Source: Macrostomum lignano
Lineage: Eukaryota
Reading direction: 5' to 3'
DNA length: 64,000 nucleotides
Assembly (NCBI GenBank): GCA_002269645.1
Contig: NIVC01001489.1
Span: 159,801-223,800, forward strand
Below are positions 21,420 to 64,000 of the stretch, piece by piece. The position numbers and the translations under genes were made by a program. Numbering within the stretch: position 1 is the stretch's first letter; each line of letters begins with the position of its first letter. The notes under the pieces are model-generated. The model was not told the origin of the DNA, ran no database searches, and saw only the letters and a program-made list of their open reading frames with translations.

Positions 21420-21469
<50 letters not shown>

Positions 21470-21477
21470 CGCCTGCC

Positions 21478-21522
<45 letters not shown>

Positions 21523-21561
21523 GTCTGTAGTAGTGTCGGTCTGTCTGTCTGTCTGTCTGCC

Positions 21562-21614
<53 letters not shown>

Positions 21615-21621
21615 GCCTGCC

Positions 21622-21680
<59 letters not shown>

Positions 21681-28656: not shown

Positions 28657-29860
28657 ATTGTTTAGCAATTTGACGATCATTATTCGCATATTTTATGCAG
28701 AACAATCATTACTACAAACATTGTATCACGCTGGCGCGCGTTAGATGCACGATTTACTGTGCGTCTAATGTAGGTGTCTATGGCAATTTTCTATCTGAGT
28801 AAAGGCAACAAGCGTGCGTCTAACGCGTGCGTGTAATGCACGGAAAGTGAGTAGCACCTCTGGAGATTTCCGATCGAAGTAGTCAGACAGCCTCTTCAGA
28901 TCAACAGGCTCGATCGATTGGAAGTGTCGGGCGCGTCCGCCTCGGGCAATGAAGATTCTGCCCATTGACTTCAGTGTCGTATTGGAAGCATAGAATGCGT
29001 CGTCAGTTAGAATATTGATTCGCCTTGTCGACATGAAATGCCGGTAGAGCGCAGCTCGGATACAAATCAACGTGGCTGGAGCAAAGTATTCGCCATTCCT
29101 CTTGCGAAGTGAGCCATAGAAGTATCGCAATAGACTGTCGATCTCGCGCGGTGTAGAAGTCGCCAAATCACGCTGAACTGACGGATGGTTCTCCATGAAG
29201 CTCTGCAACTTACCGACATAATATTCGGTAGCCTTTGTCACACTTGTACTAGCAGCGGTGTCCTGGATTTCGGAAACGAGCTGTTCCAATTCAAGTAGTT
29301 CAGCTTCTTCGTCAGGTATCTTCTTGAAAAGTGCCTCCAGAAGATCCTCCTCTTCTCGATCAATTGCCGACTCCGGTAGATTATCAGGCTCGTTCAGAAT
29401 GTCGTCAATCTCATTGGTGGACAAGCCGGAAATCATTTCGTTTGGAAATTTGCTCAGATTCAGAAGTCTGACTTCAGTTGGTGGCTCAGCCATATTCTCT
29501 CACAAGTGATTTTAATTTAACAGCTTCTTATTCCCTTCTTCGCAACACTCAATCAACTTGCGTGCCTTTCACGCATTTTTGTCTATGGTTAAGACAAATT
29601 AACTGAGCGTGCATCTAACGCGCCATCTAAAGTATTAAGCCAACGTAATACAATGCAACTCATACATCGATTTTTTGTGCTTAAATGGTCTATGGCACTC
29701 GTGCGCTGCGCATCCTACAATGCATTGTCTGTAGGATCGTCAAACAGAAAAACAATGCAAAGAATCAGCGGTCGCAGCACGTGACAACGATTTGTCTATG
29801 CCTACCGGCGCTCGCCAGACAATCGTTGTCACGCACTGGGACCGATTATTAATTATCCAT
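28657..29860 (-). mobile_element. Crypton-like (tyrosine-recombinase) element, truncated; ORF 28765..29493 encodes the N-terminal half
   Basis: TSVTKATEYYVGKLQSF...EIDSLLRYFYGSLRKRNGEYFAPATLICIRAALYRHF...FYASNTTLK resembles the CryptonA/DUF3504-associated N-terminal region (KCTD1/ZMYM-like). The C-terminal catalytic residues were not found. A subterminal hairpin lies at ~29780-29833. Confidence 0.75.
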
Positions 29861-31781: not shown

Positions 31782-34700
31782 TCAGTGCTGCATTGGCTCA
31801 CCTCGAGCTCCGCCTCGTCTCTCGGCGTCCCGTTCGGCTTTCCAAGCGGCAATTCGATTGCGAAGCTCGGGCAGCTCTTTCAGATCGGACTCGGACATGG
31901 GCATCTTTGAGTAGGGATTGGTGGCCGAGTTCAACAGGTGGCGCCTGATGGTGGCTCGGTCCAAAATCTGAAAGTTTAGGAAGGGGGAGACAGCAGGGGG
32001 TCAGGCTGCGGCAGACAGTTGAAGAGGATCTGGCAAAGCAACTGAGAAGGCTGGCCTAGCAACTGAGGATCTGGGAGGCTGGCCTAGAAACTGAGGATCT
32101 GGGAGAGTGGCCTAGCAACTGAGAAGGCTGGCCTAGCAACTGAGGATCTGGGAGGCTGGCCCAGCAACTGACACTCTTGGAGGCTGGCCCAGCAACTGAC
32201 ACTCTGGGAGGCTGGCCCAGCAACTGAGGATCTGGGAGGCTGGCCTAGCAACTGACACACTTGGAGGCTGGCCTAGCAACTGAGGATCTGGGAGGCTGGC
32301 CCAGCAACTGAGGATCTGGAAGGCTGGCCCAGTAACTGAGGATCTGGGAGGGTGGCCTTAGCAACAGAGGACCTGGGAGGGTGGCCTAGCAACTGACACT
32401 CTGGGAGGCTGGCCCAGAAACTGAGGATCTGGGAGGCTGGACCAGAAACTGAGGATCTGGGAGGCTGGCCCAGCAACTGACACTCTGGGAGGCTGGCCCA
32501 GAAACTGAGGATCTGGGAGGCTGGACCAGAAACTGAGGATCTGGGAGGCTGGCCCAGCAACTGACACTCTGGGAGGCTGGCCTAGAAACTGAGGATCTGG
32601 GAGAGTGGCCTAGCAACTGAGAAGGCTGGCCTAGCAACTGAGGATCTGGGAGGGTGGCCTAGCAACTGAGAATCTGGGACGCTGGCCCAGCAACTGAGGA
32701 TCTGGGAGGCTGGCCCAGCAACTGAGGATCTGGGAGGCTGGCCCAGCAACTGAGGATCTGGGAGGCTGGCCCAGCAACTGAGGATCTGGGAGGCTGGCCC
32801 AGTAACTGAGGATCTGGGAGGCTGGCCTATCAACTGAGAATCTGGGACGCTGGCCCAGCAACTGAGGATCTGGGAGGCTGGCCCAGCAACTGAGGATCTG
32901 GGAGGGTGGCCTTAGCAACAGAGGATCTGGGAGGGTGGCCTAGCAACTGACACTCTGGGAGGCTGGCCCAGAAACTGAGGATCTGGGAGGCTGGCCTATC
33001 AACTGAGAATCTGGGACGCTGGCCCAGCAACTGAGGATCTGGGAGGCTGGCCCAGCAGCTGAGGATCTGGGAGGCTGGCCCAGCAGCTGAGGATCTGGGA
33101 GGCTGGCCCAGCAACTGAGGATCTGGGAGGGTGGCCTATCAACTGAGAATCTGGGAGGCTGGCCCAGCAACTGAGGATCTGGGAGGCTGGCCCAGCAACT
33201 GAGGATCTGGGAGGCTGGCCCAGTAACTGAGGATCTGGGAGGGTGGCCTTAGCAACAGAGGACCTGGGAGGGTGGCCTAGCAACTGACACTCTGGGAGGC
33301 TGGCCCAGAAACTGAGGATCTGGGAGGCTGGCCCAGAAACTGAGGATCTGGGAGGCTGGCCCAGCAACTGAGGATCTGGGAGGGTGGCCTATCAACTGAG
33401 AATCTGGGACGCTGGCCCAGCAACTGAGGATCTGGGAGGCTGGTCCAGCAACTGAGGATCTGGGAGGCTGGACCAGAAACTGAGGATCTGGGAGGCTGGC
33501 CCAGCAACTGACACTCTGGGAGGCTGGCCCAGAAACTGAGGATCTGGGAGGCTGGACCAGAAACTGAGGATCTGGGAGGCTGGCCCAGCAACTGACACTC
33601 TGGGAGGCTGGCCTAGAAACTGAGGATCTGGGAGAGTGGCCTAGCAACTGAGAAGGCTGGCCTAGCAACTGAGGATCTGGGAGGGTGGCCTAGCAACTGA
33701 GAATCTGGGACGCTGGCCCAGCAACTGAGGATCTGGGAGGCTGGCCCAGCAACTGAGGATCTGGGAGGCTGGCCCAGCAACTGAGGATCTGGGAGGCTGG
33801 CCCAGCAACTGAGGATCTGGGAGGCTGGCCCAGTAACTGAGGATCTGGGAGGCTGGCCTATCAACTGAGAATCTGGGACGCTGGCCCAGCAACTGAGGAT
33901 CTGGGAGGCTGGCCCAGCAACTGAGGATCTGGGAGGGTGGCCTTAGCAACAGAGGATCTGGGAGGGTGGCCTAGCAACTGACACTCTGGAGGCTGGCCCA
34001 GAAACTGAGGATCTGGGAGGCTGGCCTATCAACTGAGAATCTGGGACGCTGGCCCAGCAACTGAGGATCTGGGAGGCTGGCCCAGCAGCTGAGGATCTGG
34101 GAGGCTGGCCCAGCAGCTGAGGATCTGGGAGGCTGGCCCAGCAACTGAGGATCTGGGAGGGTGGCCTATCAACTGAGAATCTGGGAGGCTGGCCCAGCAA
34201 CTGAGGATCTGGGAGGCTGGCCCAGCAACTGAGGATCTGGGAGGCTGGCCCAGTAACTGAGGATCTGGGAGGGTGGCCTTAGCAACAGAGGACCTGGGAG
34301 GGTGGCCTAGCAACTGACACTCTGGGAGGCTGGCCCAGAAACTGAGGATCTGGGAGGCTGGCCCAGAAACTGAGGATCTGGGAGGCTGGCCCAGCAACTG
34401 AGGATCTGGGAGGGTGGCCTATCAACTGAGAATCTGGGACGCTGGCCCAGCAACTGAGGATCTGGGAGGCTGGTCCAGCAACTGAGGATCTGGGAGGCTG
34501 GCCCAGCAACTGAGGATCTGGGAGGCTGGCCTAGCAACTGAGGATCTGGGAGGGTGGCCTTAGCAACAGAGGACCTGAGAGGCTGGCACAGCTATTGACA
34601 GGCAGACATGCAGACAACACGCACCTGTCCAGTGGGCAGCTCCACAGGGTCGGACATGAGAGTGAACATCATCTCGTCCATGAACTCGTCCGGCGCATTG

Positions 34701-37700
34701 TCATAGTCCAAGTCAACCTGCCGCCTGGCATTGGCGATCTCGTCTGTCCGCTCCCGCAGCCGCTCCAGCACCTGCAGATCCATCTCGGAGCGAATGCCGG
34801 CCCGTCGGATCCGTTCGATAGCCTGGGGGAGCAGCGACTCCGAGTAGCTGCGCTCGTCATTCACAATGGCCTCCTGGAACTCGGGCTGGACGGCCAGATT
34901 CAAGTAGATGGTGATAAAATTGCTCAGCATGGACCTCGGCTCCCAGCCGTATTTGTCCGGACTTCGGACTTTTAAAGTGTTGCACTTGCTGCCGCAGAGC
35001 TGTTTGAGATTGTAGTTGAGCATAGTTGCTAACCGCTCCACTAGTTCGCCGTTCATGAAAGCCCTGGGCAGCTCTTGAGTCAGGTAGTTGAACATTTCCA
35101 CCGTTTTTAGCGACAGGGTCAGGTAGGATTTCACCTGCAGGTTGGTGTTAGGTCAGTTTGTGGAAAATTTTTGGCTGGGAGAAACCAATAATAACCCTCT
35201 ACGAAGTCGCTCCTTATTGCCTGGCATGGACAGAGAAGCTACCCATCTCACTCTATTCGCTTCTCATTGGCTGAGACGAATAGAGAAGTCACCCACCTCA
35301 CTCTAGCCGCTTCTCACTGGCTGAGACAAACAGGGAAGCCATCTACCTCACTCCAGCCGCTTCTCATTGGCTAAGACAAACAGAGAAGCCACCAACCTCA
35401 CTCCAGTCGCCTCTCATTGGCTGAGAGAAATAGAGAAGTCACGCAACTCACACCCAGTCATTTCTTATTGACTACAGCGAATAGAAAAGGCACCACTTCA
35501 CTTCAGCAACTTCTAATTGGCTGAGATGAATACAAAAATTACCCACCCCACTCCACATTTCATTGGCGCTGAACATTTCATTGGCTAACACCGTCCAAAC
35601 CAACTGTTCCTTACAAGTCTTGCACCCGTATAACATACGCACCTGTCTCTCATTGTTATTCAGCTCCTGTCTAAGTTCTCCCTGCTGCTCGGCGGTGCAG
35701 CCTTGAAAGCCGGAATCTGCAAGGTCCTGAATCTCTCGGATTCGTTTCAAACAGCCGAGACTCTCGTCCAACAGGTAGGTGGCATCGTTAATCAACACGT
35801 TGACAAATCGTACAAATACGGGATTCTGAGACTGTCGACGGAACTGCTCCCTGTGCAGGTGGGTCGCCCAGAGGCTGTGAAATATAGTGGCTAGGTGATA
35901 GCGAATGGTGAACTTGTCGTAGAACTCGCTGCTCGAGCCCGTGCTTTCAACTTCCACGTAGAATTGTAACAGGCTAGTGACTAATCCGTCCAGACTCCAC
36001 TGCTGCATCACCAGGTCATGGAACTGAGCCTCCATACGAGGCTGCACAGTGGGATCAAGGTAAAATAATATCTCAACTAGCTTGGACACCAGGTGGGGAT
36101 TGCGCACCAGCGGATACGGATGAGACAGAGCCGCAATCACCAGGCGGAAGCAGCGCGGCACGGGAGTCTGCTTGAAGTAGCCGGGCTGGAATTCGATTAC
36201 CAGCACGAGCAGTTCGCACATGTCCTCTAGAAAGAACTCAGGCAGGCTGCGCAGCTCTTTGCACTGCTGCGTCTCGCCGTACTGCAGCAGGGAGAGCAGC
36301 CAGTCGGCCAGCTGATCGTAGTAGAACATGGCGTCCCTCAGCAGCGACTCGTGGTAGATTGCCGCCTAGCAGAGATGGATCAGTGTAAGCAATGCCAACT
36401 TAGCGAAAATTGTTAGTTGTCTTCATAACCCGAGCTTAGTCTTCATAAGCACTATTCTTCTCTAAATACTAAAGCAGAGTCAATCCGATGAAAACAGTAC
36501 CTAGGCATAGAAGCTTCCTAGCGTCACTTGCGTTGCCCCATAGTCGTTGCAGGTAACACAGGTAAAATACGATAAAGATGTCTCGGTACAAGTCTACAAA
36601 AAGTCGTCAATAAGTCAATTTGAGGTGTTCTATTGTCTGCGACTCTAAAAAAAGACTCTTGGGCGACAACAGGCACTCTGGTAGAGTTGTATCTGAGGCG
36701 TGCTTGAGTCTCTGTAGAATCACTGAGTTGCATCTCTAAAGCGCATCTGCCTCACTTTATGAATAAGACAACCTACTGCGCATAATCTACTTGAGTTAGT
36801 AGAAAGTTAAGCGCTAACACAGCGATTTTTAGACGACTTTCTGCAACTCAGGCGTGATGCGCTCGTGAGTGGCTTGCAATGACTCCTTAGCCATTCTTGT
36901 CACGGTTTTAATGCTTTTAACGGGTGAGTTAATAAATGATTCAAAGACACCGGTACGGAACTTGAATTATTCACGGAACGCTCACCTGATCGCACAGTTT
37001 AGCTCGCTTCTGACTGTTGAGAAATGTCCGAATCCTGTCGGCATTTTGCGCCTGCTCTCCGCTGTCCAGGATGCGTTCCGCTTCACGCAGATTGCGCAGT
37101 CTGCGCTTATGCTTGCGCAGCGTCGCAATCAGGCCGATGTGATGCGCGTAGGCGGCCAGAAAGAAGCCCTGCGTGTTGAAGCTGGCCGCCTCGGTGCCCA
37201 GCTCGCCTCGCCAGGCCGCCACCTCGCCGGCGTTCGCCATCAGGCGGGCATCGTCATCCTGATAATTAGTTGTTCATTGGTGATGATGATGGACCTTTGC
37301 ACTAATCCACCTGCACTTGCACCTTTGATGCACCACCTGCCCCTTGATGTAACACCTGCTCCTTGCACCATCTGCCACCTGCCCCTTGATGCACCACCTG
37401 TCCCTTGATGCACCACCTGCCACCTGCACCACCTGCCCCTTGATGCACCACCTGTTCCTTGATGCACCACCTGCCCCTTGATGCACCACCTGCCACCTGC
37501 ACCACCTGCCCCTTGATGCACCACCTGTTCCTTGATGCACCACCTGCCCCTTGATGCACCACCTGCCACCTGCACCACCTGCCCCTTGATGCACCACCTG
37601 TCCCTTGATGCACCACCTGCCCCTTGATGCACCACCTACCCCTTGATGCACCACCTGCCCCTTGATGCACCACCTGTCCCTTGATGCACCACCTGCCCCT

Positions 37701-40012
37701 TGATGCACCACCTACCCCTTGATGCACCACCTACCCCTTGATGCACCACCTGCCCTTTGATGCACCACCAGCCCCTTGATGCACCACCTGCCCCTTGATG
37801 CACCACCTGTCCCTTGATGCACCACCTGCCCCTTGATGCACCACCTACCCCTTGATGCACCACCAGCCCCTTGATGCACCACCTGCCACCTGCACCACCT
37901 GCCCCTTGATGCAACACCGACCCTTTGATGCACCAGTGCACTGCACTGAACTCACTTTGATCGGAAACGGACAGTCGGGCCTCAGCAAGAATGCCCGATC
38001 AACTTTGTCCAATGGAATCTTAGCGGCCAATTTGCACAGAGTCGCCTGCAGATTCAACAGGAAGCCTTCGCTCAGAGCGGACGATTCGTCGAATTGCATC
38101 TGGCCGCGGCTGGAGCCGAGCCGGCAGCAGCGCCAGAGCAGACGCAGCACCTCCGGGCGGCACTGCGGCTCGCGTAGCAGCGAATAGAGCAGCTGGTACT
38201 GCCGATCGCGGGCCACGTCCAGAGCCGTGTGGATAACTCGATGACTCATCAAAACCTCTTCTGGGCTCAGATTGTCCACCACTGGGAACAGTTCCTCGGC
38301 CACTTCAAACTGGGTAACACGATGATGCGATGGTGCACATTGAGTTTGCTTTTTAAATTATCGTTGAGCTCCGCTAGGTTGCATAAAATCATTTCACTTC
38401 TACACATGGTACCTAACCCATTTTTATTGAAAGCGTTATTATTTTACGTCGCCATATGCCCAAGTAAATAAATATTTGCATGATTTGTAGGCATTCAAGC
38501 AGGCGCACAACTAACAGTGACTGTGACGCAATTCTGCTCATTCCGCTTGCCCGATGAAAGCGGTACCGATGCCAAGAAGCGTCCTAAAGTTTCAGGGTCG
38601 TTGCAGATGAACACAGATAAAACAGGAAAGAAGTGACTCTAGACGACTCGAAAACGACGATATTTCACGGTACAAGTCATCAGAGTCTGCGACTCCTGGA
38701 CGGTGCAAGTGACTGGGGACCTAGTATCGTATCTGAGGCGTGCTAGAGTCGCTATAGAATCACTGACTTGCGCCTGCGTCACTTCACGAATAAGAACCGC
38801 ATTTCGCCTTTATAGAAACTATTTATTCTACTTAAATTATTAGAAAGTTAAGCGCTAACACAAAGACTCTTGGTTGACTTTTTCGCGGCTGTTGCGATTC
38901 TGCAACTCACGTGATGCGCTGCTGACTCCACGTCAAGTGGCCTCTCAGTCGCAATACAGTCGTTTGAGTCGTTGAAAGTCACAAGAGTCGCTATTTGTTT
39001 GCAATTACTCTTAAGAGATTTTTGTCACGGTAACGTTTTAAACCGGTTGAGCACATTGAGCGCCGATACTGTAGGAAGACACGCACTCATACACATGCTC
39101 AAACAGGCTGTACAGCTGCCCTGACTTTCTAATCGTCAGGCTCAGGCATGTACACTCTGTGCCCTGGGGATTGGACCTCGTTCAAATCCAAGTCCCAAAT
39201 TGATACGGTCATGCACAGTGGAACAAGAAGTCAAGGAGTGAGAGCAGCTCTGCTCCCTGCCCCAGGGAGTTCTCCAATCCCTTGAAGCGTGATTTTCGCA
39301 GTTTTTGCAGTAATAAAGCCCCAGGTTCGATTTCACTTTTAGCTTGTTAATGACAGTGAATTTTGAGCTTTCTACTATCTATTTCTGGTTTAAAAGTGAC
39401 CAATTAATTATAGCAACTTACAGACTCCGACGCGAACGGAGATAAGCAGAGAAACGCGGGCAGAAAAGACAGCCGTTCGAACAGCACCGGCACCTCAGTA
39501 TTGTAATTCCAGTTCTCCATCTGGAGCAGGAATCTGGCAAATACTCGGACACCATCAATTTGCAATTCGACCAATTCAATAATCATCTGCAGGACAGCTT
39601 TGTAAAAAGTCTCAGTCAGTCTTTGACGCTTCATCAGCGTGTGCAAATCGGTGAATAGCCGGTTAAAGACCTCGGCTCGGACGTCAGCTGACAGCTCTTG
39701 CCACAGAACAGTAACCAGGCCAGAGTCGCCAGACTCAAGCAGATGTGGCGTCAGCGGACTCAAGGCCGACATTGGCGCAGTGAAAGTGCCGGCAGCCAGC
39801 AGGCCCAAGTAGTGAACAAGGATTGCCCGGACTTCGGTCGGATGCGACCGGGACAACAGCTCGGAGATGTGAGTAACTCCGGCTACACCGTGGACTCGAA
39901 GGCCGCATAAGGGGCGGCCAGCAGATAGAAACTGACTGCTTGGACCGCACACCTGGCTAGCAAGGTAATCTAATGCAGAGTCAGCATCTCGCAGCTCTAT
40001 GTTAGTGCTCAT
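31782..40012 (-). CDS. UBE4B: Ubiquitin conjugation factor E4 B (Ufd2 core + U-box), ~878 aa, 6 coding exons
   Basis: Exons 40012-39422, 38309-37956, 37258-36986, 36365-35643, 35134-34625 and 31967-31782 are all phase 0 (2637 nt). UBE4B-type motifs: FYDKFTIRYHLATIFHSLW, FVRFVNVLINDATYLLDESL, RLATMLNYNLKQLCGSKC. U-box: APDEF...[31 protein letters not shown]. The start codon is inferred. Confidence 0.92.
32036..34585. repeat. 28-bp satellite (ggcccagcaactgaggatctgggaggct) filling the last UBE4B intron, with ~1030-bp higher-order duplication
   Basis: Identical spurious ORFs are offset by 1030-1031 bp (32582 vs 33613; 32999 vs 34029). Confidence 0.95.
35197..35470 (+). repeat. ~50-bp tandem repeat in a UBE4B intron (same family as 5853-6060)
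   Basis: agagaag(c/t)cacccacctcactc...cgcttctcattggctgaga units. Confidence 0.8.
36600..36960 (+). repeat. Dispersed repeat copy, also at ~38640-39050
   Basis: Shared blocks: gtatctgaggcgtgct.gagtc.ct.tagaatcactga, agaaagttaagcgctaacaca and tgcaactca. Confidence 0.65.
37310..37935. repeat. 19-bp intronic minisatellite (gcaccacctgccccttgat)
   Basis: About 30 units between UBE4B exons 2 and 3. Confidence 0.95.
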
Positions 40013-48526: not shown

Positions 48527-48715
48527 GACGGTCTTTGTAGCAGACTGAGAGCCGGGCTAACAAACTTAATTAGCACGGTCTTTGTAGCAGACTGAGAGCC
48601 GGGCTAACAAACTTAATTAGCACGGTCTTTGTAGCAGACTGAGAGCCGGGCTAACAAACTTAATTAGCACGGTCTTTGTAGCAGACTGAGAGCCGGGCTA
48701 ACAAACTTAATTAGC
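48527..48715 (+). repeat. 47-bp near-perfect tandem repeat x4
   Basis: cacggtctttgtagcagactgagagccgggctaacaaacttaattag. Confidence 0.95.
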
Positions 48716-50206: not shown

Positions 50207-51240
50207 CAGTGGCTGAGAGACAGGGGCACCCACCTATAGGAGACAGGGGCACCCACCTATAGCTGAGACAGGGGCACCCACCTAGGAGACAGGGGCACCC
50301 ACCTAGGAGACAGGGGCACCCACCTATAGCTGAGACAGGGGCACCCACCTATCGCTGAGACAAGGGCACCCACCTAGGAGACAGGGGCACCCACCTATAA
50401 GAGACAAGGGCACCCAAACTAGGAGACGGGACACCCACCTATAGGAGACAAGGGCACCCAAACTAGGAGACGGGGGCATCCACCTATAGGAGACAGGGGC
50501 ACCCAACCTAGGAGACGGGACACCCACCTATAGGAGACAGGGGCACCCAACCTAGGAGACGGGACACCCACCTATAGGAGACAAGGGCACCCAACCTAGC
50601 AGACGGGACACCCACCTATAGGAGACAAGGGCACCCAAACTAGGAGACGGGGGCACCCACCTATAGGAGACAGGGGCACCCAACCTAGGAGACAGGGGCA
50701 GTGGGGGCACCCAACCTAGGAGACGGGGGCAGTGGGGGCACCCAACCTAGGAGACAGGGGCAGTGGGGGCACCCAACCTAGGAGACAGGGGCAGTGGGGG
50801 CACACAACCTAGGAGACGGGACACCCACCTATAGGAGACAAGGGCACCCAACCTAGGAGACGGGACACCCACCTATAGGAGACAAGGGCACCCAACCTAG
50901 GAGACGGGACACCCACCTATAGGAGACAAGGGCACCCAAACTAGGAGACAGGGGCAGTGGGGGCACCCAACCTAGGAGACAGGGGCAGTGGGGGCACCCA
51001 ACCTAGGAGACAGGGGCAGTGGGGGCACCCAACCTAGGAGACAGGGGCAGTGGGGGCACCCAACCTAGGAGACAGGGGCAGTGGGGGCACCCAACCTAGG
51101 AGACAGGGGCAGTGGGGGCACCCAACCTAGGAGACAGGGGCAGTGGGGGCACCCAACCTAGGAGACAGGGGCAGTGGGGGCACCCAACCTAGGAGACAGG
51201 GGCAGTGGGGGCACCCAACCTTGGAGACAGGGGCACCCAC
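50207..51240. repeat. Minisatellite array (ggagacaggggcacccacctata grading into ggagacaggggcagtgggggcacccaaccta)
   Basis: Units of ~19-31 bp, with the variant switching along the array. Confidence 0.92.
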
Positions 51241-51582
51241 TAAGAGTCAAGGGTGCTCATCAAGAGACAGGGAGCGCCCACAAAAACAACAAATTGTGGC
51301 ACCCCTAAGGGTTGCGGCCCCTCCAATTCAAATCTATGCGTATCCCTAGCTACGATTTGTACACTAGCTGGTGCCTCTTATTTATTAAGGTTGCTAATTA
51401 CTTTCCAATTTTTAATTTCTAACTGTTTACCGAAAACTTTCTTTTCTAAAGAAAGCAAATTTATTCGGTAAACATTTCACAGGCTCAAGTAACTCTGCGC
51501 TATAAACTTGCCGATAGTTTTCTAGCGAGAATAATGCAATTATTACATATGAAAATGAACACAAAATTTTAGTTTCACAAAA

Positions 51583-54500
51583 ATGGCAGGCGCCATGCTG
51601 GGACTCTGGCTGGTGCTGCAGCTGCTGCTAACCGGACCTCAAGACGTATTGGCGATTGGAAATTGTTCGGATGCAGTAAGCGATTGACTGACTCACTGGC
51701 TTATGTAGAATTGCAGTGGCGTAGCTAGGATTTTGAAATGGAGGGATAACTGAAAATGTCGAAGCCATAGTCAAATAGAATAGTGTTTTTGTAATTTTTG
51801 CTTTACGTATGCATTAAAAAAGTACCTTTATCATTACTGATAGGCTAAAAAACTTTCTTAACTTTCTAAAAATACTGAAAAAGCCGTCAGACATCTGCCC
51901 TGTGACTACGGCATTTTGGGAACTCAGGATTCGCGGAAACATCGTTGTATCCCCCACCTCAGCGACGCAACTGTAGAATTGTTACATTATAAACATTTCT
52001 TAAAAATAATGCTTAATTACACCGTAAAATGTGTCAACTTGAGCACGTTCTATGAATTACCTCATTACCTACACTGGGGTGCAAAGAACTCAAGAAAAAA
52101 GTTTAGCGTTTAACTATGGGAGGGCCCGTCGACTCTGTTCGTTATCAGTTGAGCCAACAAATCGCATGATTCATGCAAACATGGACATTTAAAAGCCGTG
52201 TGACCACGTGCATTTTAATCATTTTTATGCCGTCTTAAATTATCATAAAAAGTTACAAGTACACAAGCCAATTACAAAATTAATGCATCTCAGGTGTGTG
52301 GAAAGTGCTCTCGGGTGTCAACACTTAAAAGTTAACTTGGAGTGAACGGGTATGTCTCTCTATTCACCAAGTAGGCCAAGGATCTGCCAGACTCGTAAAA
52401 TCTTGTAGGAAAATAAACATCCACAGTCCTCAAAAAAACTGTTCAGTATAACAAATACGATCCTACACAAAAAATTAGGCGCAAGCTATAAATTACTTTA
52501 CACAATCAATACCTCAGTGTTTTTAAACATGTAAAAATATTAAAGCGGACGCAAAATTTTAGACTCAAATGTACTGCCCAACAACGAAATTCTGCAAAAC
52601 TATAGAGATCTGCGTCGAAGAACTTCAAACCATCGAAAAAAACTGTTCCGAACGAAACATGGTGAGCATGAGAATGCATGTCTGATTCTAATCGAAGAGA
52701 AGTGACTCATGCGTTCAAAACTTAAAACACACTTTCCGCAGAACTTCTGTCCGAAACAAGGATTCTGCTACAACCGAACGCTTTACCTGCCTTGGTCCAC
52801 TTGTGACTATGCGAGTGAGAGATGCGACAATTTTACAGACTCAAGCGAGCCTGTCGAACTGGGCCGCTGCTATGGTGGATTCAACTTGTGTCTGGAAAAG
52901 AAGCAGTGCGACCAGGTGTCAGCGAAGAGGTCGTGCCCAAACAACAAGACCATAATCACATCGGTCTCGCCGACTAACTCCTGCTTCGTGCCTGCGACGC
53001 TGAATGTTCGCTTCACCGTTGTGCAGCAGGTAGGTCCACCAGTGATGAGACTCGGGTCCCACCGGCTCGACAACAGCCGCATCGGTCAGGAGATTCAGCT
53101 CAACAGATTACTCGACAACAACAGCTGCGTGAGCGCAGACGCACTGGGAATGTCTAGCTACGCTGGCTACAATGCGACAATTTCGTGGGTTACGCTGAAG
53201 ATGCGCTTCGTCGACAAGGACAACAACTTGGTTGCCGAGTGTCAGCCTACCTACGGATTCCTGGTTCCGCCGAAGCCAGTACCATCAATTGGCTTCCCGA
53301 CAGTGGTAGTGCGAAAGAACGGCACCGCCACTATGTACGACTATCTGTATCCGGGAAATATTCTGAACGCTACTATCGACAAGTCGAATGCATCCGCACC
53401 GTGGTGCGACAGTCTCGGTCGCTCCGAGTTTCCTGGACCCGGACCCAATGACCAGATTCGTCGGCTATGCCGAGAAGGGCCGAGGAAAGCCGCCTACTGC
53501 TATATTGAAGCACCGAGACTATATACCGCCTATTCGTTCTACACCTACTCTTATTATGGTGGCGCTCCTACCAAACAGTTTGGCTCTGGATATCTCCTGT
53601 TATCGATTGAAAATGTGCGCATGAGTTTGCACCTCAGACAGCCAGGCGATGCGAATCTGACATGCAGATTGTGGAACGGACTGCTGCCGATGCGCGACAC
53701 GTCTCCGGCTGACAGAAGCTACTTTGGAGACGAGATTCTCCGAGTCGAGTACAGGCTAGGCTGCTCCTACGGCTACGAGCCCTGCCTTGTAACTAAAAAC
53801 TGCGTCCGAGTTGGAAGTCCTTGTAGAGAGCAGCTCAATTGCAGCATGGTGAGTCTTGAATTTTGTGCACAATTTAAAATTTAATTATTACAGTACTTTC
53901 AAAGTATTGGTTAGAGCTAACTTGCAAATGAAAATACTATGCTTTTCAGGGAACGATCGACTGCCCAGCGGCGAATAGCTGCGCAAACATCAGCTCGTGC
54001 ATTGACAGTATGATTGCGATGGAGAAGAACTGCGCAGCAATCGACCAGGCAAGTACAATATTTATACCTTTTAATTACATGGTTACATACAATTGTAGAG
54101 TAAGCCTAGCGCGTTACATACGTTTCGCTAGTTGGCCTAGAAAATTCAGTGATATACTCGTATACATGTCTAGACGCATTGAAACACACTTTCTACAGAA
54201 ATTCTGTCCGAAACAAGGATTCTGCTACAACCGAACGCTTTACCTGCCTTGGTCCACTTGTGACTATGCGAGTGAGAGATGCGACAATTTTACAGACTCA
54301 AGCGAGCCTGTCGAACTGGGCCGCTGCTATGGTGGATTCAACTTGTGTCTGGAAAAGAAGCAGTGCGACCAGGTGTCAGCGAAGAGGTCGTGCCCAAACA
54401 ACAAGACCATAATCACATCGGTCTCGCCGACTAACTCCTGCTTCGTGCCTGCGACGCTGAATGTTCGCTTCACCGTTGTGCAGCAGGTAGGTCCACCAGT

Positions 54501-57500
54501 GATGAGACTCGGGTCCCACCGGCTCGACAACAGCCGCATCGGTCAGGAGATTCAGCTCAACAGATTACTCGACAACAACAGCTGCGTGAGCGCAGACGCA
54601 CTGGGAATGTCTAGCTACGCTGGCTACAATGCGACAATTTCGTGGGTTACGCTGAAGATGCGCTTCGTCGACAAGGACAACAACTTGGTTGCCGAGTGTC
54701 AGCCTACCTACGGATTCCTGGTTCCGCCGAAGCCAGTACCATCAATTGGCTTCCCGACAGTGGTAGTGCGAAAGAACGGCACCGCCACTATGTACGACTA
54801 TCTGTATCCGGGAAATATTCTGAACGCTACTATCGACAAGTCGAATGCATCCGCACCGTGGTGCGACAGTCTCGGTCGCTCCGAGTTTCCTGGACCCGGA
54901 CCCAATGACCAGATTCGTCGGCTATGCCGAGAAGGGCCGAGGAAAGCCGCCTACTGCTATATTGAAGCACCGAGACTATATACCGCCTATTCGTTCTACA
55001 CCTACTCTTATTATGGTGGCGCTCCTACCAAACAGTTTGGCTCTGGATATCTCCTGTTATCGATTGAAAATGTGCGCATGAGTTTGCACCTCAGACAGCC
55101 AGGCGATGCGAATCTGACATGCAGATTGTGGAACGGACTGCTGCCGATGCGCGACACGTCTCCGGCTGACAGAAGCTACTTTGGAGACGAGATTCTCCGA
55201 GTCGAGTACAGGCTAGGCTGCTCCTACGGCTACGAGCCCTGCCTTGTAACTAAAAACTGCGTCCGAGTTGGAAGTCCTTGTAGAGAGCAGCTCAATTGCA
55301 GCATGGTGAGTCTTGAATTTTGTGCACAATTTAAAATTTAATTATTACAGTACTTTCAAAGTATTGGTTAGAGCTAACTTGCAAATGAAAATACTATGCT
55401 TTTCAGGGAACGATCGACTGCCCAGCGGCGAATAGCTGCGCAAACATCAGCTCGTGCATTGACAGTATGATTGCGATGGAGAAGAACTGCGCAGCAATCG
55501 ACCAGGCAAGTACAATATTTATACCTTTTAATTACATGGTTACATACAATTGTAGAGTAAGCCTAGCGCGTTACATACGTTTCGCTAGTTGGCCTAGAAA
55601 ATTCAGTGATATACTCGTATACATGTCTAGACGCATTGAAACACACTTTCTACAGAAATTCTGTCCGAAACAAGGATTCTGCTACAACCGAACGCTTTAC
55701 CTGCCTTGGTCCACTTGTGACTATGCGAGTGAGAGATGCGACAATTTTACAGACTCAAGCGAGCCTGTCGAACTGGGCCGCTGCTATGGTGGATTCAACT
55801 TGTGTCTGGAAAAGAAGCAGTGCGACCAGGTGTCAGCGAAGAGGTCGTGCCCAAACAACAAGACCATAATCACATCGGTCTCGCCGACTAACTCCTGCTT
55901 CGTGCCTGCGACGCTGAATGTTCGCTTCACCGTTGTGCAGCAGGTAGGTCCACCAGTGATGAGACTCGGGTCCCACCGGCTCGACAACAGCCGCATCGGT
56001 CAGGAGATTCAGCTCAACAGATTACTCGACAACAACAGCTGCGTGAGCGCAGACGCACTGGGAATGTCTAGCTACGCTGGCTACAATGCGACAATTTCGT
56101 GGGTTACGCTGAAGATGCGCTTCGTCGACAAGGACAACAACTTGGTTGCCGAGTGTCAGCCTACCTACGGATTCCTGGTTCCGCCGAAGCCAGTACCATC
56201 AATTGGCTTCCCGACAGTGGTAGTGCGAAAGAACGGCACCGCCACTATGTACGACTATCTGTATCCGGGAAATATTCTGAACGCTACTATCGACAAGTCG
56301 AATGCATCCGCACCGTGGTGCGACAGTCTCGGTCGCTCCGAGTTTCCTGGACCCGGACCCAATGACCAGATTCGTCGGCTATGCCGAGAAGGGCCGAGGA
56401 AAGCCGCCTACTGCTATATTGAAGCACCGAGACTATATACCGCCTATTCGTTCTACACCTACTCTTATTATGGTGGCGCTCCTACCAAACAGTTTGGCTC
56501 TGGATATCTCCTGTTATCGATTGAAAATGTGCGCATGAGTTTGCACCTCAGACAGCCAGGCGATGCGAATCTGACATGCAGATTGTGGAACGGACTGCTG
56601 CCGATGCGCGACACGTCTCCGGCTGACAGAAGCTACTTTGGAGACGAGATTCTCCGAGTCGAGTACAGGCTAGGCTGCTCCTACGGCTACGAGCCCTGCC
56701 TTGTAACTAAAAACTGCGTCCGAGTTGGAAGTCCTTGTAGAGAGCAGCTCAATTGCAGCATGGTGAGTCTTGAATTTTGTGCACAATTTAAAATTTATTA
56801 TTACAGTACTTTCAAAGTATTGGTTAGAGCTAACTTGCAAATGAAAATACTATGCTTTTCAGGGAACGATCGACTGCCCAGCGGCGAATAGCTGCGCAAA
56901 CATCAGCTCGTGCATTGACAGTATGATTGCGATGGAGAAGAACTGCGCAGCAATCGACCAGGCAAGTACAATATTTATACCTTTTAATTACATGGTTACA
57001 TACAATTGTAGAGTAAGCCTAGCGCGTTACATACGTTTCGCTAGTTGGCCTAGAAAATTCAGTGATATACTCGTATACATGTCTAGACGCATTGAAACAC
57101 ACTTTCTACAGAAATTCTGTCCGAAACAAGGATTCTGCTACAACCGAACGCTTTACCTGCCTTGGTCCACTTGTGACTATGCGAGTGAGAGATGCGACAA
57201 TTTTACAGACTCAAGCGAGCCTGTCGAACTGGGCCGCTGCTATGGTGGATTCAACTTGTGTCTGGAAAAGAAGCAGTGCGACCAGGTGTCAGCGAAGAGG
57301 TCGTGCCCAAACAACAAGACCATAATCACATCGGTCTCGCCGACTAACTCCTGCTTCGTGCCTGCGACGCTGAATGTTCGCTTCACCGTTGTGCAGCAGG
57401 TAGGTCCACCAGTGATGAGACTCGGGTCCCACCGGCTCGACAACAGCCGCATCGGTCAGGAGATTCAGCTCAACAGATTACTCGACAACAACAGCTGCGT

Positions 57501-60500
57501 GAGCGCAGACGCACTGGGAATGTCTAGCTACGCTGGCTACAATGCGACAATTTCGTGGGTTACGCTGAAGATGCGCTTCGTCGACAAGGACAACAACTTG
57601 GTTGCCGAGTGTCAGCCTACCTACGGATTCCTGGTTCCGCCGAAGCCAGTACCATCAATTGGCTTCCCGACAGTGGTAGTGCGAAAGAACGGCACCGCCA
57701 CTATGTACGACTATCTGTATCCGGGAAATATTCTGAACGCTACTATCGACAAGTCGAATGCATCCGCACCGTGGTGCGACAGTCTCGGTCGCTCCGAGTT
57801 TCCTGGACCCGGACCCAATGACCAGATTCGTCGGCTATGCCGAGAAGGGCCGAGGAAAGCCGCCTACTGCTATATTGAAGCACCGAGACTCTATACCGCC
57901 TATTCGTTCTACACCTACTCTTATTATGGTGGCGCTCCTACCAAACAGTTTGGCTCTGGATATCTCCTGTTATCGATTGAAAATGTGCGCATGAGTTTGC
58001 ACCTCAGACAGCCAGGCGATGCGAATCTGACATGCAGATTGTGGAACGGACTGCTGCCGATGCGCGACACGTCTCCGGCTGACAGAAGCTACTTTGGAGA
58101 CGAGATTCTCCGAGTCGAGTACAGGCTAGGCTGCTCCTACGGCTACGAGCCCTGCCTTGTAACTAAAAACTGCGTCCGAGTTGGAAGTCCTTGTAGAGAG
58201 CAGCTCAATTGCAGCATGGTGAGTCTTGAATTTTGTGCACAATTTAAAATTTAATTATTACAGTACTTTCAAAGTATTGGTTAGAGCTAACTTGCAAATG
58301 AAAATACTATGCTTTTCAGGGAACGATCGACTGCCCAGCGGCGAATAGCTGCGCAAACATCAGCTCGTGCATTGACAGTATGATTGCGATGGAGAAGAAC
58401 TGCGCAGCAATCGACCAGGCAAGTACAATATTTATACCTTTTAATTACATGGTTACATACAATTGTAGAGTAAGCCTAGCGCGTTACATACGTTTCGCTA
58501 GTTGGCCTAGAAAATTCAGTGATATACTCGTATACATGTCTAGACGCATTGAAACACACTTTCTACAGAAATTCTGTCCGAAACAAGGATTCTGCTACAA
58601 CCGAACGCTTTACCTGCCTTGGTCCACTTGTGACTATGCGAGTGAGAGATGCGACAATTTTACAGACTCAAGCGAGCCTGTCGAACTGGGCCGCTGCTAT
58701 GGTGGATTCAACTTGTGTCTGGAAAAGAAGCAGTGCGACCAGGTGTCAGCGAAGAGGTCGTGCCCAAACAACAAGACCATAATCACATCGGTCTCGCCGA
58801 CTAACTCCTGCTTCGTGCCTGCGACGCTGAATGTTCGCTTCACCGTTGTGCAGCAGGTAGGTCCACCAGTGATGAGACTCGGGTCCCACCGGCTCGACAA
58901 CAGCCGCATCGGTCAGGAGATTCAGCTCAACAGATTACTCGACAACAACAGCTGCGTGAGCGCAGACGCACTGGGAATGTCTAGCTACGCTGGCTACAAT
59001 GCGACAATTTCGTGGGTTACGCTGAAGATGCGCTTCGTCGACAAGGACAACAACTTGGTTGCCGAGTGTCAGCCTACCTACGGATTCCTGGTTCCGCCGA
59101 AGCCAGTACCATCAATTGGCTTCCCGACAGTGGTAGTGCGAAAGAACGGCACCGCCACTATGTACGACTATCTGTATCCGGGAAATATTCTGAACGCTAC
59201 TATCGACAAGTCGAATGCATCCGCACCGTGGTGCGACAGTCTCGGTCGCTCCGAGTTTCCTGGACCCGGACCCAATGACCAGATTCGTCGGCTATGCCGA
59301 GAAGGGCCGAGGAAAGCCGCCTACTGCTATATTGAAGCACCGAGACTCTATACCGCCTATTCGTTCTACACCTACTCTTATTATGGTGGCGCTCCTACCA
59401 AACAGTTTGGCTCTGGATATCTCCTGTTATCGATTGAAAATGTGCGCATGAGTTTGCACCTCAGACAGCCAGGCGATGCGAATCTGACATGCAGATTGTG
59501 GAACGGACTGCTGCCGATGCGCGACACGTCTCCGGCTGACAGAAGCTACTTTGGAGACGAGATTCTCCGAGTCGAGTACAGGCTAGGCTGCTCCTACGGC
59601 TACGAGCCCTGCCTTGTAACTAAAAACTGCGTCCGAGTTGGAAGTCCTTGTAGAGAGCAGCTCAATTGCAGCATGGTGAGTCTTGAATTTTGTGCACAAT
59701 TTAAAATTTAATTATTACAGTACTTTCAAAGTATTGGTTAGAGCTAACTTGCAAATGAAAATACTATGCTTTTCAGGGAACGATCGACTGCCCAGCGGCG
59801 AATAGCTGCGCAAACATCAGCTCGTGCATTGACAGTATGATTGCGATGGAGAAGAACTGCGCAGCAATCGACCAGGCAAGTACAATATTTATACCTTTTA
59901 ATTACATGGTTACATACAATTGTAGAGTAAGCCTAGCGCGTTACATACGTTTCGCTAGTTGGCCTAGAAAATTCAGTGATATACTCGTATACATGTCTAG
60001 ACGCATTGAAACACACTTTCTACAGAAATTCTGTCCGAAACAAGGATTCTGCTACAACCGAACGCTTTACCTGCCTTGGTCCACTTGTGACTATGCGAGT
60101 GAGAGATGCGACAATTTTACAGACTCAAGCGAGCCTGTCGAACTGGGCCGCTGCTATGGTGGATTCAACTTGTGTCTGGAAAAGAAGCAGTGCGACCAGG
60201 TGTCAGCGAAGAGGTCGTGCCCAAACAACAAGACCATAATCACATCGGTCTCGCCGACTAACTCCTGCTTCGTGCCTGCGACGCTGAATGTTCGCTTCAC
60301 CGTTGTGCAGCAGGTAGGTCCACCAGTGATGAGACTCGGGTCCCACCGGCTCGACAACAGCCGCATCGGTCAGGAGATTCAGCTCAACAGATTACTCGAC
60401 AACAACAGCTGCGTGAGCGCAGACGCACTGGGAATGTCTAGCTACGCTGGCTACAATGCGACAATTTCGTGGGTTACGCTGAAGATGCGCTTCGTCGACA

Positions 60501-63500
60501 AGGACAACAACTTGGTTGCCGAGTGTCAGCCTACCTACGGATTCCTGGTTCCGCCGAAGCCAGTACCATCAATTGGCTTCCCGACAGTGGTAGTGCGAAA
60601 GAACGGCACCGCCACTATGTACGACTATCTGTATCCGGGAAATATTCTGAACGCTACTATCGACAAGTCGAATGCATCCGCACCGTGGTGCGACAGTCTC
60701 GGTCGCTCCGAGTTTCCTGGACCCGGACCCAATGACCAGATTCGTCGGCTATGCCGAGAAGGGCCGAGGAAAGCCGCCTACTGCTATATTGAAGCACCGA
60801 GACTCTATACCGCCTATTCGTTCTACACCTACTCTTATTATGGTGGCGCTCCTACCAAACAGTTTGGCTCTGGATATCTCCTGTTATCGATTGAAAATGT
60901 GCGCATGAGTTTGCACCTCAGACAGCCAGGCGATGCGAATCTGACATGCAGATTGTGGAACGGACTGCTGCCGATGCGCGACACGTCTCCGGCTGACAGA
61001 AGCTACTTTGGAGACGAGATTCTCCGAGTCGAGTACAGGCTAGGCTGCTCCTACGGCTACGAGCCCTGCCTTGTAACTAAAAACTGCGTCCGAGTTGGAA
61101 GTCCTTGTAGAGAGCAGCTCAATTGCAGCATGGTGAGTCTTGAATTTTGTGCACAATTTAAAATTTATTATTACAGTACTTTCAAAGTATTGGTTAGAGC
61201 TAACTTGCAAATGAAAATACTATGCTTTTCAGGGAACGATCGACTGCCCAGCGGCGAATAGCTGCGCAAACATCAGCTCGTGCATTGACAGTATGATTGC
61301 GATGGAGAAGAACTGCGCAGCAATCGACCAGGCAAGTACAATATTTATACCTTTTAATTACATGGTTACATACAATTGTAGAGTAAGCCTAGCGCGTTAC
61401 ATACGTTTCGCTAGTTGGCCTAGAAAATTCAGTGATATACTCGTATACATGTCTAGACGCATTGAAACACACTTTCTACAGAAATTCTGTCCGAAACAAG
61501 GATTCTGCTACAACCGAACGCTTTACCTGCCTTGGTCCACTTGTGACTATGCGAGTGAGAGATGCGACAATTTTACAGACTCAAGCGAGCCTGTCGAACT
61601 GGGCCGCTGCTATGGTGGATTCAACTTGTGTCTGGAAAAGAAGCAGTGCGACCAGGTGTCAGCGAAGAGGTCGTGCCCAAACAACAAGACCATAATCACA
61701 TCGGTCTCGCCGACTAACTCCTGCTTCGTGCCTGCGACGCTGAATGTTCGCTTCACCGTTGTGCAGCAGGTAGGTCCACCAGTGATGAGACTCGGGTCCC
61801 ACCGGCTCGACAACAGCCGCATCGGTCAGGAGATTCAGCTCAACAGATTACTCGACAACAACAGCTGCGTGAGCGCAGACGCACTGGGAATGTCTAGCTA
61901 CGCTGGCTACAATGCGACAATTTCGTGGGTTACGCTGAAGATGCGCTTCGTCGACAAGGACAACAACTTGGTTGCCGAGTGTCAGCCTACCTACGGATTC
62001 CTGGTTCCGCCGAAGCCAGTACCATCAATTGGCTTCCCGACAGTGGTAGTGCGAAAGAACGGCACCGCCACTATGTACGACTATCTGTATCCGGGAAATA
62101 TTCTGAACGCTACTATCGACAAGTCGAATGCATCCGCACCGTGGTGCGACAGTCTCGGTCGCTCCGAGTTTCCTGGACCCGGACCCAATGACCAGATTCG
62201 TCGGCTATGCCGAGAAGGGCCGAGGAAAGCCGCCTACTGCTATATTGAAGCACCGAGACTCTATACCGCCTATTCGTTCTACACCTACTCTTATTATGGT
62301 GGCGCTCCTACCAAACAGTTTGGCTCTGGATATCTCCTGTTATCGATTGAAAATGTGCGCATGAGTTTGCACCTCAGACAGCCAGGCGATGCGAATCTGA
62401 CATGCAGATTGTGGAACGGACTGCTGCCGATGCGCGACACGTCTCCGGCTGACAGAAGCTACTTTGGAGACGAGATTCTCCGAGTCGAGTACAGGCTAGG
62501 CTGCTCCTACGGCTACGAGCCCTGCCTTGTAACTAAAAACTGCGTCCGAGTTGGAAGTCCTTGTAGAGAGCAGCTCAATTGCAGCATGGTGAGTCTTGAA
62601 TTTTGTGCACAATTTAAAATTTTATTATTACAGTACTTTCAAAGTATTGGTTAGAGCTAACTTGCAAATGAAAATACTATGCTTTTCAGGGAACGATCGA
62701 CTGCCCAGCGGCGAATAGCTGCGCAAACATCAGCTCGTGCATTGACAGTATGATTGCGATGGAGAAGAACTGCGCAGCAATCGACCAGGCAAGTACAATA
62801 TTTATACCTTTTAATTACATGGTTACATACAATTGTAGAGTAAGCCTAGCGCGTTACATACGTTTCGCTAGTTGGCCTAGAAAATTCAGTGATATACTCG
62901 TATACATGTCTAGACGCATTGAAACACACTTTCTACAGAAATTCTGTCCGAAACAAGGATTCTGCTACAACCGAACGCTTTACCTGCCTTGGTCCACTTG
63001 TGACTATGCGAGTGAGAGATGCGACAATTTTACAGACTCAAGCGAGCCTGTCGAACTGGGCCGCTGCTATGGTGGATTCAACTTGTGTCTGGAAAAGAAG
63101 CAGTGCGACCAGGTGTCAGCGAAGAGGTCGTGCCCAAACAACAAGACCATAATCACATCGGTCTCGCCGACTAACTCCTGCTTCGTGCCTGCGACGCTGA
63201 ATGTTCGCTTCACCGTTGTGCAGCAGGTAGGTCCACCAGTGATGAGACTCGGGTCCCACCGGCTCGACAACAGCCGCATCGGTCAGGAGATTCAGCTCAA
63301 CAGATTACTCGACAACAACAGCTGCGTGAGCGCAGACGCACTGGGAATGTCTAGCTACGCTGGCTACAATGCGACAATTTCGTGGGTTACGCTGAAGATG
63401 CGCTTCGTCGACAAGGACAACAACTTGGTTGCCGAGTGTCAGCCTACCTACGGATTCCTGGTTCCGCCGAAGCCAGTACCATCAATTGGCTTCCCGACAG

Positions 63501-64000
63501 TGGTAGTGCGAAAGAACGGCACCGCCACTATGTACGACTATCTGTATCCGGGAAATATTCTGAACGCTACTATCGACAAGTCGAATGCATCCGCACCGTG
63601 GTGCGACAGTCTCGGTCGCTCCGAGTTTCCTGGACCCGGACCCAATGACCAGATTCGTCGGCTATGCGAGAAGGGCCGAGGAAAGCCGCCTACTGCTATA
63701 TTGAAGCACCGAGACTATATACCGCCTATTCGTTCTACACCTACTCTTATTATGGTGGCGCTCCTACCAAACAGTTTGGCTCTGGATATCTCCTGTTATC
63801 GATTGAAAATGTGCGCATGAGTTTGCACCTCAGACAGCCAGGCGATGCGAATCTGACATGCAGATTGTGGAACGGACTGCTGCCGATGCGCGACACGTCT
63901 CCGGCTGACAGAAGCTACTTTGGAGACGAGATTCTCCGAGTCGAGTACAGGCTAGGCTGCTCCTACGGCTACGAGCCCTGCCTTGTAACTAAAAACTGCG
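51583..64000 (+). CDS. Uncharacterised secreted Cys-rich glycoprotein of tandem ~402-aa modules (3'-incomplete; module 8 frameshifted)
   Basis: Signal exon 51583-51675 (MAGAMLGLWLVLQLLLTGPQDVLAIGNCSDA|gtaagc). Exon A (1107 nt) starts at 52742, 54199, 55656, 57112, 58569, 60026, 61482 and 62939. Exon B (99 nt) starts at 53950, 55407, 56863, 58320, 59777, 61233 and 62690. A ends ATG|gtgagt and B ends CAG|gcaagt; all are phase 0. No family was recognised. Confidence 0.75.
52720..64000 (+). repeat. Tandem array of >=8 near-identical 1456-1457-bp units
   Basis: The same 443-474-aa ORF recurs at 54010, 55467, 56923, 58380, 59837, 61293 and 62750. Confidence 0.98.

Follow-up and report, generated by a model that had tools for sequence, protein, structure and literature searches.

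Homogenised coding repeats that span several exons are an architecture already known. In human LPA, kringle IV-2 is encoded by a two-exon coding variable number of tandem repeats (VNTR), with a unit of ~5.5 kb and documented copy-number polymorphism, while transmembrane mucins (MUC16 and MUC17) combine a giant repeated ectodomain, encoded by homogenised arrays, with a Ser/Thr/Pro (STP)-rich stalk and a single-pass anchor. Here we describe a tandem array of coding exons in a 64,000-nt stretch of the Macrostomum lignano genome (contig NIVC01001489.1, positions 159,801–223,800, forward strand; hereafter the window, in whose coordinates all positions are given). The array occupies positions 51,583–64,000, and we read it, with a probability of roughly 0.6, as the 5′ part of one very large gene encoding a giant, lineage-restricted and probably membrane-anchored cell-surface glycoprotein. 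Two described protein groups provide points of comparison. The polycystin-1/REJ family is characterized by a GPS motif upstream of the first transmembrane segment, a PLAT/LH2 domain and a region of 11 transmembrane segments, while its member SpREJ1 is heavily glycosylated and has been described with one or two transmembrane segments (PMC1934368). Within Macrostomum, the adhesive protein Mlig-ap2 is built from 255- and 221-aa repeats together with vWD, TIL, LDL-receptor and TSP1 domains (PMC6410801).

The gene begins with a leader exon and a second short exon, denoted B0, after which two exons, denoted A and B, alternate as a repeated pair, each pair encoding one module:

51501..51506, + strand: candidate TATAAA box (core promoter), ~80 nt 5′ of the start codon.
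51583..51675, + strand: leader exon, coding part; signal peptide MAGAMLGLWLVLQLLLTGPQDVLA followed by IGNCSDA; donor GTAAGC.
52563..52661, + strand: exon B0, 99 nt, phase 0, encoding TQMYCPTTKFCKTIEICVEELQTIEKNCSERNM; preceded by TTTTAG and followed by GTGAGC.
52742..54048, + strand: module 1; exon A 52742–53848, GT-AG intron 53849–53949, exon B 53950–54048, followed by the GC-AG intron 54049–54198.
54199..55505, + strand: module 2; exon A 54199–55305, exon B 55407–55505.
55656..56961, + strand: module 3; exon A 55656–56762, exon B 56863–56961; intron 1 is 100 nt.
57112..58418, + strand: module 4; exon A 57112–58218, exon B 58320–58418.
58569..59875, + strand: module 5; exon A 58569–59675, exon B 59777–59875.
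60026..61331, + strand: module 6; exon A 60026–61132, exon B 61233–61331; intron 1 is 100 nt.
61482..62788, + strand: module 7; exon A 61482–62588, exon B 62690–62788.
62939..64000, + strand: module 8, with exon A truncated where the window ends; loss of 1 bp (CC to C) at 63667/63668 shifts the frame; assembled stop at 63818–63820.

Exon A starts at 52742, 54199, 55656, 57112, 58569, 60026, 61482 and 62939, giving a period of 1457 or 1456 bp, with the 1456-bp units recurring at every third unit. Tandem Repeats Finder did not list the array because the longest period it considers is 500 bp, which lies below that of the array. A unit opens with exon A (1107 nt, 369 codons), which a GT-AG intron of 100 or 101 nt separates from exon B (99 nt, 33 codons); it closes with a 150-nt GC-AG intron, whose donor is CAG/GCAAGT and whose acceptor is TTTCTACAG/ (slashes mark splice junctions throughout). 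All exons are in phase 0, and the frame stays open through seven successive A+B pairs, each encoding a 402-aa module. A first-pass annotation, made from the sequence alone, had proposed this unit and a single signal-peptide exon at 51583–51675; the unit was recovered in all seven intact copies, and the signal-peptide exon occurs once in the window.

The copies are ~99.9% identical, introns included, and differ at 4 of 1457 columns. These comprise the first codon of exon A (AAC, encoding N, in module 1; AAA, encoding K, in the other copies), a synonymous Leu codon (CTA/CTC, reading A A A C C C C A in copies 1–8), a 1-bp indel or substitution in intron 1 of copies 3, 6 and 7, and the single-base deletion in copy 8. 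In the latter, one C is missing (GCC GAG becomes GCG AG) and the frame is shifted, so that the assembled frame encodes 3171 aa and stops at codon 3172. Loss of one C from CC in a near-perfect repeat is a typical consensus error, and the copy 8 indel is probably such an error. The earlier count of at least eight identical modules therefore needs qualifying: the array is real, but only seven copies are intact, the eighth is frameshifted and four columns vary.

The start of the gene differs from that first proposed. The supposed first intron of 1066 nt, between the leader and module 1, harbours exon B0, which is flanked by introns of 887 nt (51676–52562) and 80 nt (52662–52741). B0 carries Cys residues at positions 5, 11, 17 and 28, all shared with exon B, and is collinear with TEMFCPTTSSCKNFSVCMDEITSMEEDCAANDL, which lies between the signal peptide and the first module in two predicted M. 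lignano proteins, P0096 (A0A1I8FW02) and P0101 (A0A1I8J2W3). The leader exon, which translates as MAGAMLGLWLVLQLLLTGPQDVLAIGNCSDA, with a hydrophobic core and a V-L-A cleavage-type end, likewise resembles the N terminus of these proteins (MAGALLQLWLALLL...GNCSDE), and identity over leader plus B0 is 42%. The junction 51675 to 52742 of the first-pass annotation thus skips a 99-nt, phase 0 exon with collinear counterparts in both relatives, and the protein junction it implied, CSDA/NFCPKQGFC, is probably wrong, as B0 intervenes. The order in the protein is signal peptide, B0, A1, B1 and onward, and the repeat is better thought of structurally as B+A.

Three features were observed just upstream of the leader exon. 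The interval 51530–51582, downstream of the TATA box, contains short upstream ATGs (ATGCAATTATTACATATGAAAATGAAC...TAG) ahead of the main ATG. By inspection, an acceptor-like TTTTAG ends at 51572, 10 nt 5′ of the main ATG; as a candidate acceptor for a spliced leader or within the 5′ untranslated region, it could remove these upstream ATGs. Further upstream, positions 50217–51235 are filled with dense 22-, 31- and 44-nt G-rich tandem repeats (GGGGCACCCAACCTAGGAGACA...) with a higher-order period of 256 bp, which stop ~350 bp 5′ of the leader exon's start codon.

We compared the array with its relatives in public databases. A word-index search returned five relatives, while an exhaustive HMMER profile search gave 7 matches among 1.84 billion protein representatives, including one spurious bacterial repeat protein and two garbled fragments. 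Scanning JGI metagenome contigs with the family alignment yielded no confirmed relative. The relatives from M. lignano are uncharacterised predicted proteins, among them P0101, P0096, P0097 (A0A1I8FVC6) and P0104 (BOX15_Mlig010875g1). At the nucleotide level, related units were found on three contigs from unrelated samples (L001 and L003 from Logan, L002 from ENA) and on the M. lignano contig NIVC01001490.1. A literature search on the SRA, ENA and JGI accessions of the samples gave no result.

The B-intron-A-intron-B layout with phase 0 exons is present in all three contigs from unrelated samples, where the donors after exon B are canonical (GTAAGT, GTAAAG and GTAATT in L001, L002 and L003, respectively). 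Nucleotide similarity between L001 and the window sets in 3 nt ahead of exon A and ceases 2 nt short of the exon's end; because similarity is confined to the exons, the introns are not conserved. On NIVC01001490.1, exon A of an edge module is likewise a single uninterrupted exon, with similarity starting 1 nt before exon A and 76% nucleotide identity to exon A of the window. Furthermore, the M. lignano gene models P0004, P0006, P0096 and P0101 span both A to B and B to A junctions, reading ...NCSM/GEIDCAAANGC...CAANGQ/NFCPKQGMC... at the two junction types.

In P0101, a signal peptide and B0 precede two divergent modules, after which come four identical modules of 409 aa. The M. lignano relatives share with the window gene the module itself, the signal peptide plus B0 start, the positions of the A/B junctions and an array of identical interior modules. 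In contrast, their module is 409 aa long and their first two modules are divergent, whereas module 1 of the window already equals the interior modules. These models are fragmentary, ending in unrelated tails or at contig breaks in the array, and none has a studied function. Base 1 of NIVC01001490.1 falls in the edge module of a homologous gene, that is, the assembly breaks at the module array, and family models in UniProt include frameshifted fragments or carry unrelated tails (P0098, P0099 and the ends of P0006 and P0101). The automatic UniProt names of the relatives (EGF-like, disintegrin, GON and ZP) have no corresponding Pfam match at E≤10 in the linker, the module, P0006, P0096 or P0097.

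Each module contains 24 Cys residues and 11 N-x-S/T sequons, of which exon A carries 19 and 9, respectively. Every one of the 24 Cys is conserved throughout the family, as are most of the 11 sequons in the majority of its members. The motif C-x5-7-C-x5-C has 4 non-overlapping (6 overlapping) matches per circularised module, compared with 0.23 in 5000 residue shuffles; both the fourfold motif and the 11 sequons had been recognized by the first-pass annotation. Its further argument, that the motif is completed across splice junctions, holds for A/B and B/A but probably not for the leader junction: a Cys spacing of 7, 6, 7, 6, 7, 6 and 6 is unbroken over the A/B junction and carries on over B/A. 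In composition, the module is 8.7% S, 5.5% T and 7.0% P (21% for S+T+P) and 6% Cys. The sole conserved dibasic site is the KR in AKRSC (module residues 62–63), which is internal and present in all homologues; no dibasic or furin-type site was found at the module borders.

The module did not match any Pfam family at E≤1, the Cys-rich linker had no match even at E≤10, and a PDB sequence search returned nothing significant for the module or for the C-terminal region of P0097. We generated two AlphaFold2 models, one of the native module and one, made with 9 sequences, of a circularly permuted module that keeps the Cys-rich region contiguous. Mean pLDDT (predicted local distance difference test) values were 57 and 62, with a beta-rich core at 75–88 and the Cys-rich parts unresolved. 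In PDB, Foldseek matched the models to nothing but chains of pilins, adhesins, cadherins and MSP, all generic beta-sandwich proteins at TM-scores ≤0.2, and no fold family could be assigned to the module. The models thus predict a beta-rich core (~residues 82–340) flanked by a Cys-rich stretch, the latter completed only across the B to A junction. This structural check had been suggested at the outset; it gave weak models and no fold match. That the family was described as unknown stands as far as Pfam, PDB and Foldseek assignments are concerned, but predicted M. lignano orthologues and paralogues are already in UniProt and NCBI.

The C-terminal end of the protein was approached through the M. 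lignano relatives. Residues 1–100 of P0097 are 89% identical to residues 215–314 of the window module, compared with ~70% for modules of the P0101 type. These residues belong to a partial module with which P0097 begins; an exon-B segment, a degenerate edge module and ~1900 aa of non-repeat sequence follow. The protein then runs through KRRRRR and an STP-rich stretch to its one hydrophobic helix (~2335–2360) and finishes with a tail of ~80 aa. Segment-wise Pfam scans detected the REJ domain (PF02010) in P0097 (41.5 bits) and in its paralogue P0103 (70 bits; cutoff 25), and PF02010 matches are precomputed for P0102–P0105. Between REJ and the transmembrane helix lie ~370 aa, including the STP-rich stalk. 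REJ was seen in these relatives, while the window itself ends within the array, before any such region. By analogy with these relatives, we propose with moderate confidence that the window gene would also end in REJ, stalk and transmembrane helix, giving a membrane-anchored giant ectodomain.

Like PKD1 and SpREJ1, the M. lignano relatives present a long array of beta-rich extracellular repeats, then REJ, then a membrane anchor. In contrast, their repeats are not PKD repeats, and Pfam finds no GPS, PLAT or channel-like region of 11 transmembrane segments. A GPS-like CRSWSG..W..C...VTCVCHDISSFIGVF was seen by eye in P0103, without a Pfam GPS match at E≤1, and Pfam scans of the relatives revealed no PLAT/LH2 domain or multi-pass region, P0097 having a single hydrophobic segment. 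The relatives are therefore at most SpREJ1-like REJ proteins with one or two transmembrane segments, and not orthologues of polycystin-1. A literature search for Macrostomum REJ proteins found nothing.

Taken together, these data suggest how the locus may be expressed. The transcript would be spliced from the leader to B0 and on through n successive A and B exons, with each A+B pair contributing one 402-aa module. The product would enter the secretory pathway and would be disulfide-bonded and heavily N-glycosylated; consecutive modules would be structurally interlocked, because the Cys-rich stretch is only completed across the B to A junction. Judging from the relatives, the array would most likely extend past the window end and pass through divergent edge modules and a Cys-rich region to REJ; an STP-rich stalk would then lead to a single transmembrane helix with a short cytoplasmic tail. 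We infer that the identical modules of such a giant membrane-anchored ectodomain would form a long rod serving in binding or adhesion, and that the protein may have a binding, adhesion or receptor function. The first-pass proposal of an extracellular, glycosylated product of >3000 aa from one signal peptide agrees with the seven in-frame 402-aa modules and their sequons.

The array itself is best read as a homogenised coding macrosatellite under concerted evolution. The repeated unit holds whole exons in phase 0-0 (1107 and 99 nt) and is present in seven intact copies. The 4 variable columns in 1457 contrast with 64–68% amino acid identity to the modules of P0101 (52–57% to the environmental modules) and with introns that are not conserved between relatives. 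With every exon in phase 0 and complete 1457-bp units arranged head to tail, units can be gained or lost without disturbing the frame; unequal crossing-over and gene conversion may thus alter the number of modules while homogenising the copies. L001 contains just one unit, whose two ends overlap by 30 nt, the pattern that a collapsed array should leave. Exon skipping, which had also been suggested as a source of variable module number, is possible given that all exons are in phase 0. The earlier view of one gene built by exon-pair amplification is independently supported by the conserved exon/intron layout, by the M. lignano models that read across both junction types and by the 24 conserved Cys. 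As in LPA kringle IV-2, each unit contains two whole exons, the copies are near-identical including their introns, and the unit copy number sets the number of modules, but the kringle fold is unrelated to the module described here and the LPA unit is longer (~5.5 kb versus 1.46 kb).

Several points weigh against reading the locus as the 5′ part of a gene for a membrane-anchored glycoprotein. The window ends inside module 8, before the C terminus of the gene, and as assembled the frameshift in module 8 ends the open reading frame (ORF) at 63818–63820, after 3171 aa and with no anchor. P0097 may belong to a paralogue rather than to the orthologue. The junction support from P0004, P0006, P0096 and P0101 consists of gene predictions, not cDNAs, and the GC donor after exon B is non-canonical where the relatives use GT. 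Finally, the structure models are weak (pLDDT 57 and 62), the Foldseek TM-scores do not exceed 0.2 and no specific binding function is supported. Some of these points would fit a giant protein that is secreted whole, with no anchor, and serves as a scaffold, mucus or adhesive, possibly cut into ~402-aa units as a true polyprotein; we consider this unlikely, though less so if the copy 8 frameshift is real. A signal peptide is present, no transmembrane segment lies inside the window and the frame as assembled would give a secreted product of 3171 aa; however, the frameshift is of the kind typical of consensus errors, and in M. lignano a module of the window type leads on to REJ and a transmembrane helix. 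The conserved dibasic KR, found in all homologues, could suggest processing, but it lies within the module, whereas the borders are without a dibasic or furin-type site and the Cys-rich stretch runs continuously across them, which argues against cutting there. On the same grounds the array does not match a polyprotein of the nematode polyprotein-antigen type, in which every unit border has a protease cleavage site. Large size, a repetitive and Cys-rich sequence and glycosylation are also found in Macrostomum adhesive proteins, and Mlig-ap2, from the same genus, is a giant, repetitive, Cys-containing, glycosylated secreted protein. An adhesive of this type was nevertheless rejected: the module has 402 aa rather than 255 or 221, and none of the vWD, TIL, LDL and TSP1 domains of Mlig-ap2 was found by Pfam in the module, P0096 or P0097. 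Nor is the module mucin-like, with S+T+P at 21%, 6% Cys and a predicted beta-rich fold; in contrast to MUC16 and MUC17, the modules are Cys-rich and N-glycosylated rather than Pro/Thr/Ser repeats, and Pfam finds no SEA domain. The polyprotein and the adhesive or mucus protein of the first-pass annotation were thus not borne out.

It is distinctly unlikely that the copy number, near-identity or frameshift is partly an assembly artefact, or that the frameshift is real and marks a decaying locus or truncated gene copy. The 1-bp differences fall in short homopolymers (the CC that is reduced to C in copy 8, and a run of A in intron 1), NIVC01001490.1 breaks exactly at the edge module, and in assemblies of short reads the array has shrunk to a single collapsed unit; the contig break and the collapsed units indicate that such arrays are hard to assemble. 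However, the variants are structured (A A A C C C C A, and 1456-bp units at every third position), which would not be expected from simple read stacking, seven copies are intact without stops, and M. lignano models also hold arrays of identical modules. That each unit is its own gene is highly improbable, whether as ORFs starting at MIAMEK or as operon cistrons resolved by spliced-leader trans-splicing at the exon A acceptors. ORFs of 443–474 aa do start at MIAMEK in every unit, and trans-splicing and operons are common in M. lignano, with ~30% of genes trans-spliced and ~15% in operons (PMC12582326). But the 150-nt intron after exon B is open in frame in the window, which produces these misleading ORFs; the corresponding intron is 148 nt in L001 and 124 nt in L002, neither a multiple of 3. 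Moreover, the MIAMEK Met lies inside the conserved exon B and the stretch after it is not conserved, while exon A, with 19 of the 24 Cys and 9 of the 11 sequons, has no start codon or signal peptide. The unit contains no polyadenylation signal (AATAAA or ATTAAA), and the M. lignano models join consecutive modules in one frame. The first-pass annotation, which had argued for one gene over separate MIAMEK genes, was right in this respect.

The family is lineage-restricted and uncharacterised, and its predicted members are already public. The locus nevertheless offers a clean case of an exon pair that has been amplified and evolves in concert within coding sequence, and its 402-aa domain is covered by no curated library and restricted to a very narrow animal lineage. 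If the link to REJ and the transmembrane helix holds, this would be an unusual REJ-family architecture in a flatworm genus used to model adhesion, regeneration and sexual selection. More speculatively, the module may be a previously undescribed, macrostomid-confined extracellular fold that forms a length-variable rod on a single-pass REJ receptor, which would amount to a surface protein akin to polycystin-1 or SpREJ1 with the VNTR replacing PKD repeats; the number of copies could then set how long the ectodomain is, for instance where gametes, partners or substrates are recognized. For annotation, the locus contains two concrete errors to fix, the missed exon and the probable indel, and illustrates how prokaryote-style ORF calls (MIAMEK) and automatic names (EGF, disintegrin, GON and ZP) mislead on such genes.

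Elsewhere in the window, an ADAM-like metalloprotease-disintegrin gene lies upstream of the array on the + strand (18135–25764):

18135–18692, + strand: reprolysin match.
18916–19149, + strand: ORF with the zinc motif.
20045–21314, + strand: disintegrin-like Cys-rich ORFs.
21349–21963, + strand: Pfam ADAM_CR match, 48.5 bits.
22282–22515, + strand: EGF-like ORF.
22933–25764, + strand: 943-aa Ser/Thr/Pro-rich repeat ORF with a hydrophobic segment at its end.

All of these may belong to a single ADAM whose mucin-like stalk would be very long. Low-complexity repeats at 9534–10344 and 21349–21850 resemble coding sequence, with several open frames on either strand (VVAVVPVV / TTGTTATTG, and a CLSVCLSV microsatellite); they probably represent simple-sequence DNA rather than genes. 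A single-exon ORF of 360 aa at 12735–13817 (+ strand) has no Pfam match and several hydrophobic stretches, suggesting a multi-pass membrane protein, while a 242-aa ORF at 28765–29493 (− strand), with a sub-threshold match to the QRICH1 domain (24.9 bits; cutoff 30.8), may represent a fragment of a gene that is domesticated or related to transposons. Scanning the window for Rfam families and tRNA genes gave no hits. Exons of ubiquitin conjugation factor E4 B (UBE4B/Ufd2), with Pfam matches to Ufd2P_core and U-box, occupy 34592–40012 on the − strand; the best database match is 49% identical, and no M. lignano protein matched. Finally, a perfect tandem repeat of four 47-bp copies (100% matches) is located at 48528–48715.

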